Assembly (NCBI GenBank): GCA_950097015.1
Contig: CATNEN010000037.1
Span: 3,534,001-3,598,000 of the forward strand
DNA from: Macrostomum hystrix
Lineage: Eukaryota > Animalia > Platyhelminthes
Direction of reading: 5' to 3'
Length of the DNA stretch: 64,000 bases
The translations under genes and the position numbers were made by a program. Below are positions 30,498 to 34,800 of this stretch, in pieces. The notes under the pieces are model-generated. The model was given only the letters and a program-made list of their open reading frames with translations, made no database searches and was not told the origin of the DNA. Position 1 is the first letter of the stretch, and every line of letters begins with the position of its first letter.

Positions 30498-31856
30498 TCA
30501 CACAGAGGTGAGGCGAAGGCTGACCCGACAGTCACAGGGGGTGCATTGTTTGGAACCGCCGGCGGTGCTCCATCGCTGCTCACCGATGGGACTCAGTCGC
30601 CTCAGCGGCTGCAGCTCCTCGGCAGCGCCAACAATTTCGTCGCTGTCATCAAAATTTCCAACGCCAATTTCTAGCGGCGTCGCCGTCCTCGGCGGCTGCG
30701 GCGGCGTCAGCGGCGGAGTCACGGGCAGCGGGCGGCGCTCCGGTCGGAACTGGTACTGCGCCACAGCCTTCCCATTGCTGGCGGGCGCGGCGCAGCAGAC
30801 GAACAGCTTCCGCTGCAGCTCCTGACGGAAGCGACGGCCGAGCACAAAGTAGAAGATCCAGTTCGTGGCGTTGTTGGTGTACATGAGAATGGCGAAAACT
30901 CGCTCGGCGATTTTCAGCGCTGCAGCTCGTCCGTGACCGCCGCGCTGCAGATCGCTGCGTCGCTCCGTGGCGTAGATAAGGTAGAGCTCGTAGGGAAGGG
31001 CGAACAGCAAGAAGGTGGAGTTCATGCCGATCAAGGCGATGGAGATTCGCCGCTGCTGATGGCTCAGCCTGGCTACGTCACTAGGAAAAGTGCGCTTGAA
31101 GCGGTGCAGGCTGTACATGATGCCGGCGCTGCTGACGGCCAGGCAGACGGCCGGCAGGAACACGCGCAGCACCAGAGTGCTGTAGAAATAGTACGGCGAC
31201 TTCCACTTCTGGGCGCAGACGCCGCCGCCTCCGCCGTTCGCGCTGCCGTTGCTGTTGGACTCGTTTGCGCCAAGATTTCTTTCGTAGTACTTGACGGAGC
31301 TGGTGACCGCGGCCACCGCCATGGCCATCGGGATGGTCAGCGTCACCGCCAGGGCGCGCTTTGACGCGGCGTAGTTCAACTGACGTCGGCACGCCAGCGG
31401 CAGGACGGCGCTCAAGCAGCGGGTGAGGCTGATTCCGACCTGGACCCAGCTGGATGCGATCAGGCCGTAGTACTGCAGCATGGTCAGGCCGTAGCACGCT
31501 GGCGCGCTCCAGCTTCTGGGGTCGTAGCTGCCAGTAGCGGCTGACGGAGATAACTCGGCTCTGACAATGGCACGCACAATATTCAAGTACATGATTGGCA
31601 GGCCGACAGACATGACGCACAGGTCAGTGAGGCTGAGGGCAATGAACCATGGCCTGGCCTCCTTCTGGGTGCTGCCGCGGCGCAGCAGGACGGTGACGCA
31701 GACCGCAGTGCCAGCACAGCCGGACACATACAGCAGGGGTACCAGCCAGGCGAACAGGTATTTGTACACGGCGGCGAGTAGTTCAAGAGCAGCCGCTTCG
31801 CTTGCGGCGTCGGCTGTTGCCGAGTGGTCGGTTGCGTTCGGGTTGCTGTTAGGCAT
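30498..31856 (-). CDS. Intronless class A (rhodopsin-like) GPCR, FMRFamide/peptide-receptor-like orphan
   Basis: 452-aa ORF from ATG with 7 hydrophobic segments; LSLTD (TM2), Cys at the top of TM3 and in ECL2, S.W.QVGISLTRC..AV.PL (TM3), FLP (TM5), FALP (TM6), NNATNWIFY...RRFRQEL (TM7/H8). Confidence 0.92.
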   Translation of the reverse strand: MPNSNPNATDHSATADAASEAAALELLAAVYKYLFAWLVPLLYVSGCAGTAVCVTVLLRRGSTQKEARPWFIALSLTDLCVMSVGLPIMYLNIVRAIVRAELSPSAATGSYDPRSWSAPACYGLTMLQYYGLIASSWVQVGISLTRCLSAVLPLACRRQLNYAASKRALAVTLTIPMAMAVAAVTSSVKYYERNLGANESNSNGSANGGGGGVCAQKWKSPYYFYSTLVLRVFLPAVCLAVSSAGIMYSLHRFKRTFPSDVARLSHQQRRISIALIGMNSTFLLFALPYELYLIYATERRSDLQRGGHGRAAALKIAERVFAILMYTNNATNWIFYFVLGRRFRQELQRKLFVCCAAPASNGKAVAQYQFRPERRPLPVTPPLTPPQPPRTATPLEIGVGNFDDSDEIVGAAEELQPLRRLSPIGEQRWSTAGGSKQCTPCDCRVSLRLTSV

Positions 31857-32141: not shown

Positions 32142-34800
32142 CTCGTAGCTAGACTATTAGCTGGAATCGTTGCTAGGCTATTAGAGGGAATCACAGATAA
32201 TATATAAATAAGTTATATATTATCTGTGGAGGGAATCGTTGCTAGGCTATTAGAGGGAATCGTTGCTAGGTTATTAGAGGGAATCGTAGCTAGGCTATTA
32301 GAGGGAATCGTAGCTAGGCTATTAGAGGGAATCGTAGCTAGACTATTAGAGGGAATCGTAGCTAGGCTATTAGAGTGAATCGTAGCTAGGCTATTAGAGG
32401 GAATCACAGATAATATATAAATAAGTTATATATTATCTGTGGAGGGAATCGTTGCTAGGCTATTAGAGGGAATCGTTGCTAGGTTATTAGAGGGAATCGT
32501 TGCTAGGCTATTAGAGGGAATCGTAGCTAGGCTATTAGAGGGAATCGTAGCTAGACTATTAGAGGGAATCGTTGCTAGGCTATTAGAGGGAATCGTAGCT
32601 AGGCTATTAGAGGGAATCACAGATAATATATAAATAAGTTATATATTATCTGTGGAGGGAATCGTTGCTAGGCTATTAGAGGGAATCGTTGCTAGGCTAT
32701 TAGAGGAAATCACAGATTATATATAAATAAGTTATATATTATATGTGGAGGGAATCGTTGCTAGGCTATTAGAGGGAATCGTAGCTAGGCTATTAGAGGG
32801 AATCATAGCTAGGCTATTAGAGGGAATCGTAGCTAGACTATTAGAGGGAATCGTAGCTAGACTATTAGAGGGAATCGTTGCTAGGCTATTAGAGGGAATC
32901 GTAGCTAGGCTATTAGAGGGAATCGTAGCTAGACTATTAGAGGGAATCGTAGCTAGGCTATTAGAGGGAATCGTAGCTAGGCTATTAGAGGGAATCACAG
33001 ATAATATATAAATAAGTTATATATTATCTGTGGAGGGAATCGTTGCTAGGCTATTAGAGGGAATCGTTGCTAGGTTATTAGAGGGAATCGTAGCTAGGCT
33101 ATTAGAGGGAATCGTTGCTAGGCTATTAGAGGGAATCGTAGCTAGGCTATTAGAGGGAATCGTTGCTAGGCTATTAGAGGAAATCACAGATTATATATAA
33201 ATAAGTTATATATTATATGTGGAGGGAATCGTTGCTAGGCTATTAGAGGGAATCGTTGCTAGGCTATTAGAGGGAATCGTAGCTAGGCTATTAGAGGGAA
33301 TCACAGATAATATATAAATAAGTTATATATTATCTGTGGAGGGAATCGTTGCTAGGCTATTAGAGGGAATCGTAGCTAGGCTATTAGAGGGAATCACAGA
33401 TAATATATAAATAAGTTATATATTATCTGTGGAGGGAATCGTTGCTAGGCTATTAGAGGGAATCGTTGCTAGGCTATTAGAGGAAATCACAGATTATATA
33501 TAAATAAGTTATATATTATATGTGGAGGGAATCGTTGCTAGGCTATTAGAGGGAATCGTAGCTAGGCTATTAGAGGGAATCATAGCTAGGCTATTAGAGG
33601 GAATCGTAGCTAGACTATTAGAGGGAATCGTAGCTAGACTATTAGAGGGAATCGTTGCTAGGCTATTAGAGGGAATCGTAGCTAGGCTATTAGAGGGAAT
33701 CGTAGCTAGACTATTAGAGGGAATCGTAGCTAGGCTATTAGAGGGAATCGTAGCTAGGCTATTAGAGGGAATCACAGATAATATATAAATAAGTTATATA
33801 TTATCTGTGGAGGGAATCGTTGCTAGGCTATTAGAGGGAATCGTTGCTAGGTTATTAGAGGGAATCGTAGCTAGGCTATTAGAGGGAATCGTTGCTAGGT
33901 TATTAGAGGGAATCGTAGCTAGGCTATTAGAGGGAATCGTTGCTAGGCTATTAGAGGGAATCACAGATAATATATAAATAAGTTATATATTATCTGTGAG
34001 AGGGAATCGTTGCTAGGCTATTAGAGGGAATCGTTGCTAGGCTATTAGAGGGAATCGTAGCTAGGCTATTAGAGGGAATCGTAGCTAGGCTATTAGAGGG
34101 AATCGTAGCTAGACTATTAGAGGGAATCGTAGCTAGGCTATTAGAGGGAATCACAGATAATATATAAATAAGTTATATATTATCTGTGGAGGGAATCGTT
34201 GCTAGGCTATTAGAGGGAATCGTTGCTAGGCTATTAGAGGGAATCGTAGCTAGACTATTAGAGGGAATCGTAGCTAGACTATTAGAGGGAATCGTAGCTA
34301 GACTATTAGAGGGAATCGTTGCTAGGCTATTAGAGGGAATCGTAGCTAGGCTATTAGAGGGAATCGTAGCTAGACTATTAGAGGGAATCGTAGCTAGACT
34401 ATTAGAGAGAATCGTAGCTAGACTATTAGAGGGAATCGTTGCTAGGCTATTAGAGGGAATCGTAGCTAGGCTATTAGAGGGAATCGTAGCTAGGCTATTA
34501 GAGGGAATCACAGATAATATATAAATAAGTTATATATTATCTGTGGAGGGAATCGTTGCTAGGCTATTAGAGGGAATCGTAGCTAGACTATTAGAGGGAA
34601 TCGTAGCTAGACTATTAGAGGGAATCGTAGCTAGACTATTAGAGGGAATCGTTGCTAGGCTATTAGAGGGAATCGTAGCTAGGCTATTAGAAGGAATCGT
34701 AGCTAGGCTATTAGAGGGAATCGTAGCTAAACTATTAGCTGGAATCGTAGCTAGACTATTAGAGGGAATCGTTGCTAGGCTATTAGAGGGAATCGTAGCG
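32142..34800. repeat. 24-bp minisatellite punctuated by 13 copies of a 37-bp AT-rich hairpin
   Basis: Unit GAGGGAATCGT(A/T)GCTAG(G/A)CTATTA. Hairpin CACAGATAATATATAA-ATAAG-TTATATATTATCTGTG at 32192, 32405, 32618, 32711, 32996, 33185, 33302, 33395, 33488, 33773, 33962, 34152 and 34509. Confidence 0.97.

Follow-up and report, generated by a model that had tools for sequence, protein, structure and literature searches.

The closest described relative of the locus reported here is the P element of Drosophila melanogaster, whose transposase has the domain order THAP, split RNase H and GTP-binding insert and cuts at the element tip on one strand and 17 nt inside on the other, leaving 17-nt 3' tails on the donor (PMC7776569). 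In excision junctions of the Drosophila P element, a templated insert stands between remnants of the two ends, each of up to 17 nt, and a target copy lies on either outer side (PMC2895639, Table 1). In assays, zebrafish THAP9 also excises the Drosophila P element, with larger flanking deletions than the Drosophila enzyme, and no mention of 17-nt scars was found in the paper on zebrafish Pdre2 and THAP9 (PMC10983969). Tandem repeats that derive from transposons, a further type of object with which our locus invites comparison, are the subject of a review (PMC9659126).

The locus lies on contig 37 of the flatworm Macrostomum hystrix, in a stretch of 64,000 nucleotides (positions 1-64000, hereafter the window); the genome searched is a 220-Mb assembly in 42 contigs. 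Here a minisatellite with a 24-bp unit is interrupted 13 times by a 37-bp hairpin. We read this hairpin, with a probability of roughly 90%, as the excision scar of a P-superfamily transposon that was left in one 24-bp unit and later multiplied to 13 copies as the array copied itself. The array, its scars and a duplicated block are as follows, in window coordinates:

32143..34799, plus strand: 24-bp minisatellite of about 86 units with 13 interrupting, scar-bearing units (TRF, unit map)
32184..32236, plus strand: scar 1 with its duplication (target copy 32184-32191, footprint 32192-32228, target copy 32229-32236)
32405..32441, plus strand: scar 2, exact (palindrome search)
32618..32654, plus strand: scar 3, exact (palindrome search)
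32711..32747, plus strand: scar 4, variant with two arm changes and one in the left 8-mer (palindrome search, unit map)
32996..33032, plus strand: scar 5, exact (palindrome search)
33185..33221, plus strand: scar 6, variant sharing the three linked changes of scar 4 (palindrome search, unit map)
33302..33338, plus strand: scar 7, exact (palindrome search)
33395..33431, plus strand: scar 8, exact (palindrome search)
33488..33524, plus strand: scar 9, variant, again with the three linked changes of scar 4 (palindrome search, unit map)
33773..33809, plus strand: scar 10, exact (palindrome search)
33962..33998, plus strand: scar 11, exact, then one extra A before the right 8-mer (palindrome search, unit map)
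34152..34188, plus strand: scar 12, exact (palindrome search)
34509..34545, plus strand: scar 13, exact (palindrome search)
32562..34115, plus strand: two tandem copies of a 777-bp block, each with 23 units and 5 scars (unit map, alignment)

A pattern search of the window for the 16-5-16 palindrome returned 13 matches between 32192 and 34545, all on the plus strand, and the chance expectation from 100 dinucleotide-preserving shuffles is 0. The unit-by-unit parse places 7, 7, 2, 10, 6, 3, 2, 2, 10, 6, 6 and 13 units between successive hairpins and reproduces exactly the positions and spacings of all 13 given in a first-pass annotation of this DNA. The perfect 16-bp arms described there are found in 10 of the 13, whereas the other three (32711, 33185 and 33488) carry two identical arm changes that hit different pairs and weaken the stem; DNA folding gives -12.0 kcal/mol for the perfect hairpin and -6.0 kcal/mol for the variant. 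Compensatory changes were looked for in both arms of the three variant hairpins and not found. The same annotation had every hairpin sitting between identical 8-mers, which holds for nine of the ten exact hairpins, flanked on both sides by GAGGGAAT. The copy at 33962 has one additional A ahead of its right 8-mer, the only blemish among the exact copies, and in all three variants the left 8-mer is GAGGAAAT, one change away.

That the 8-mers represent a target duplication can be judged within the array itself. GAGGGAAT occurs once in every normal 24-bp unit and twice in every hairpin unit, where its copies flank 37 inserted bases, such that hairpin units exceed normal ones by 45 bp, made up of the 8-bp duplication and the insert. 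Because the normal unit contains a single 8-mer, the neighbouring units are in effect empty sites and the duplication in the hairpin units is real. All 83 of the 83 genome matches to a pair of units lie at this one locus, and no 24-mer array free of scars was found elsewhere in the genome; the array being unique to the locus, there is no external copy of the empty site and the neighbouring units serve in its place. In the unit map an identical unit variant comes after every hairpin.

The ends of the hairpin are by no means private to the array. A genome-wide search with the 16-nt arm, allowing up to one mismatch, gave 72 forward and 76 reverse matches, the reversed control yielding 4 of each, and many of the arm matches form facing pairs. 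Ten longer pairs were extracted for element analysis, with lengths of 172, 194, 334, 1150, 1313, 1961, 2782, 3642, 3755 and 5131 bp. The arm sequence bounds both ends in 10 of 10, and each element is flanked by an 8-bp target duplication specific to its site (nine perfect, one with a single mismatch). The terminal inverted repeat is 31 bp long, matches at 30 of its 31 positions and has the hairpin arm as its tip. The idea of an excision footprint stood or fell with longer elements carrying these termini, and with ten of them found it survived. Elements and scars together account for 37 independent genomic sites at which the two 8-bp flanks match. A purely local palindromic duplication was rejected on the grounds that the same ends recur at these 37 unrelated sites; to this reading, as to the hAT and Helitron readings considered below, we attach practically no weight. 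The 37 duplications reveal a palindromic target preference, G T.... A C (43-44/76 after symmetrising), with which the window target GAGGGAAT agrees only partly. The copies are 96-100% alike and their target duplications are intact, from which it follows that the family moved recently. The forms of 194, 334, 1150, 1313, 1961 and 2782 bp are internal-deletion derivatives, and their breakpoints are scattered, at element positions of about 196, 418, 607 and 1095 among others.

Two of the ten inserts have unrelated interiors, namely L031 (contig 14: 821903-827033, 5131 bp) and L040 (contig 38: 2341498-2341669, 172 bp). Both retain just 17-23 nt or so of the family ends, but the 8-bp duplications around them are perfect. 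Either the filler captured in a scar may be very long here, or two end stubs may have mobilised the foreign DNA that lies between them.

The copies of 3.6-3.8 kb contain a long reading frame in which Pfam recognises THAP, RNase H and GTP-binding insert domains, all above cut-off. The THAP domain (PF05485) covers residues 17-101 in L033, L032 and L035 with E-values of 1.8e-9 to 3.7e-9; the TNP-like RNase H N-terminal domain (PF21787) scores about 2e-22 to 6e-22 and is followed by the predicted TNP-like GTP-binding insert (PF21788, E 2e-25), at full length in L035. The next frame (L033:981-1763, minus strand) has sub-threshold matches, in the expected order, to PF21789, the RNase H C-terminal piece (E 0.031), and to PF22824, the THAP9 C-terminal domain (E 0.077). 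Residues 190-552 match the solved Drosophila P transposase 6P5A with an E-value of 2.8e-23. This arrangement of domains is the one published for P transposase (PMC7776569), and the family is predicted to encode a P-type transposase in which a THAP domain precedes an RNase H fold that a GTP-binding insert splits. Identity among the three coding copies is about 99%, and in this assembly every one has a private lesion: a 2-bp insertion within the frame on contig 38, a 117-bp deletion inside the GTP-binding insert on contig 1, and a 965-bp deletion that removes the 3' part on contig 2.

The elements bear directly on two origins that the first-pass annotation had kept as alternatives. hAT elements make 8-bp duplications too, but the transposase of the elements with these ends is of the P type: the Pfam matches of the coding copies are P-type domains only, with no hAT domain (BED finger, hAT dimerisation) among them, and a hAT origin was rejected. 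A Helitron end had been suggested by a CTAG downstream of the hairpin. Helitrons, which carry a 3' hairpin ahead of a CTRR end, have neither inverted repeats nor target duplications. Here the elements have both, a 31-bp inverted repeat and 8-bp duplications, and the unit map places CTAG in every 24-bp unit of the array, with the result that this origin was likewise rejected.

P-superfamily transposases are numerous and diverse in this genome, where the TNP-like RNase H N-terminal domain is matched at least 92 times, in many cases within long open frames. A second P family, 3.18 kb in length, has inverted repeats of about 130 bp and 8-bp duplications (L061-L063; contig 33: 1347980-1351165), with further copies on contigs 3, 31, 1 and 38. 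The tip of these repeats, CATGGATGAATAAT, is similar to that of the fly P element, and the family's domain matches fall in open frames of 573 and 333 aa. At least six copies have identical match scores and the three that were compared directly are 99.8-99.9% identical; this family looks recently active. It has scars of its own at L066:1501-1553 and L067:1501-1555, each between matching 8-bp duplications and each retaining about 14-20 nt per end plus AT-rich filler.

Returning to the family whose ends occur in the window, about 28 of the 37 sites are occupied by short scars of 33-99 bp at unrelated loci, each with its own 8-bp duplication. Leaving aside point changes, these scars retain about 15-19 nt of each end (mostly 16-18) and never more of the 31-bp repeat; exact 12-nt tips are retained in 18 scars outside the window. 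An identical 35-bp scar, 17 + 18 nt, is present at five loci, exactly at four of them and with a point change at the fifth; a sixth scar of 35 bp departs from it by a change near one tip. The base at the centre of the 35-bp scars agrees in every case with element position 18. This recurrent form suggests that 18 nt are retained on one side. The inner cut is read from repaired products, in which 17 and 18 nt are inseparable. The fillers of longer scars are AT-rich and assembled from pieces of the element end. Two complex scars (L057:301-430 and L003:1501-1565) have the appearance of multi-step templated repair: in one, an end part plus filler is repeated two or three times, and in the other a partial target plus end copy is duplicated within the scar.

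The same set of scars allows two further readings to be weighed. In the first, the short forms would have been made in place by internal deletion, through replication slippage or aborted gap repair, rather than by excision with staggered tails and joining. The family certainly yields deleted copies (the six listed above, from 194 to 2782 bp), and repair at the Drosophila P element also combines template copying with end joining (PMC2895639). But the true derivatives break at scattered positions, whereas the roughly 28 short forms break at 15-19 nt on both sides; with deletion breakpoints so scattered, a scar limit near 17-18 nt speaks for an inner cut that is fixed in this family too. Deletion in place is accordingly improbable as the source of the short forms.

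The second takes up the micro-MITE half of the first-pass annotation's proposal: the palindrome of 35-37 bp would itself be a tiny mobile element that had moved as such both to the array and to the other sites. The recurrence of one 35-bp form at five loci, with a different 8-bp duplication at each, fits such an element, but this form is simply the product of joining both tails with no loss, and the sharp limit at about 17-19 nt fits a fixed cut followed by repair. Moreover, the 31-bp repeat of the Drosophila P element contains the transposase binding sites (PMC7776569), which would be missing from a unit with 17 nt per end. Most sites have a filler of their own, and that of the window is unique; the 37-bp form seen there is confined to the array, other genomic sites having different fillers. 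We consider a micro-MITE very improbable, and excision of a full element followed by repair is the reading with which we proceed.

Set against the full element, the window scar joins 16 nt from one end to 17-18 nt from the other through 3-4 filler bases, which amends the 16 + 5 + 16 structure of the first-pass annotation; that description stands for the palindrome as such. In scar 1 the 16 nt come from the left end and the 17-18 nt from the right end, both belonging to the 31-bp inverted repeat. The filler is common to all 13 copies and absent from the rest of the genome. Together with the three linked changes of the variants, this unique shared filler implies one insertion and one excision, followed by copying in the array. 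The two copies of the 777-bp block are identical at 754 of 777 bases (97%), and such a duplication means that scars were copied jointly with their adjoining units; the first two scar periods (213 bp) agree at 210 of 213 bases. Both main claims of the first-pass annotation are therefore borne out: that of a P-superfamily excision footprint by the longer elements with the same termini, their 8-bp duplications, the P-type transposase and the independent scars, and that of amplification along with the array by the unique common filler, the linked changes and the block duplication.

The sequence of events can be envisaged as follows. A P-superfamily transposon would have entered one 24-bp unit once, duplicating the 8-bp target GAGGGAAT. 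Like that of the Drosophila P element, its transposase probably makes a staggered cut, at the tip on one strand and about 17-18 nt further in on the other, which would leave each flank with a 3' tail of element sequence. The two tails would then have been sealed by end joining with 3-4 filler bases; as the element has inverted repeats at its ends, the joined product reads as a near-perfect palindrome of 37 bp, with a target copy on either side. Finally, unequal exchange or replication slippage may have copied the scar unit and blocks of neighbours until 13 copies were reached. The model starts from what is observed (common termini, target duplications, transposase type, independent scars, unique filler, block duplication), while we infer where the inner cut falls, by which pathway the break was repaired and how the array was amplified. 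The element copy is no longer in the array, and its insertion there is accordingly read from the scar. The array itself predates the scar and is not transposon-derived; it captured only the 45-bp scar and carries it as a marker of higher-order blocks.

Could the palindrome have driven the amplification that preserved it? With 16-bp arms and an AT-rich composition it can form a cruciform or hairpin, and it may promote replication stalling and unequal exchange and thereby block duplications. The 13 scars lie within 2.4 kb and a scar-to-scar spacing of 2-3 units is seen five times; the junction of the 777-bp duplication sits at a scar unit. In one assembly this pattern of spacings and junction is not separable from chance. 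An active role of this kind is doubtful.

The surroundings of the array are rich in repeats of other types. Tandem repeats make up 43% of the window, in 39 separate arrays with unrelated units and periods of 8-59 bp that follow each other about every 1-2 kb, and no related sequence was found among the spacers between the window's arrays. A rhodopsin-family receptor gene of 452 aa is encoded in a single frame on the minus strand (30498-31856; PF00001, E 7e-11). Its start codon is about 290 bp from the start of the array, so that the array lies upstream of the gene. In the fly, gene starts are favoured sites of P elements.

The scar records an ordinary event that has become unusually readable, owing to its clear preservation and amplification inside a minisatellite. 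A P-type excision scar is a known kind of object, while its source family was not found described in the literature searched; a full-text literature search of incomplete coverage found no paper on P-type elements or scars in Macrostomum. The roughly 30 natural scars that stop at 15-19 nt of the 31-bp repeat point to a long staggered cut that is conserved outside insects. On this indirect evidence, the long stagger and the repeat length of 31 bp would be old features of the superfamily and not peculiarities of the fly. Having moved recently, the P family is a candidate endogenous mobile element for flatworm study. The scar is also a built-in marker of which blocks were duplicated and in what order, and as such useful for studies of minisatellite growth.

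In comparison with known systems, the flatworm family shares with the Drosophila melanogaster P element an N-terminal THAP domain and an RNase H fold predicted to be split by a GTP-binding insert, as well as the 31-bp terminal inverted repeat and the 8-bp target duplication; both also prefer palindromic targets and have non-autonomous copies with internal deletions (PMC7776569). The likeness extends to the junctions, which have about 17 nt of each end and AT-rich templated filler at the donor site (PMC2895639). The two differ in their tips (CACAG in the flatworm, CATGATG in the fly) and in length, the flatworm element measuring 3.76 kb and the fly element 2.9 kb; the flatworm family has its own preferred target, G T.... 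A C. Outside insects, a P-superfamily system is likewise found in zebrafish (Pdre2/THAP9), which has a THAP9-like transposase and target duplications of 8 bp, but the inverted repeats of Pdre2 are no longer than 12-13 bp (PMC10983969), and the flatworm genome is set apart by the many natural scars preserved in it. With transposon-derived tandem repeats, lastly, the locus shares the propagation of a transposon piece as part of a tandem array, whereas in the window the array came first and carries only a captured scar.
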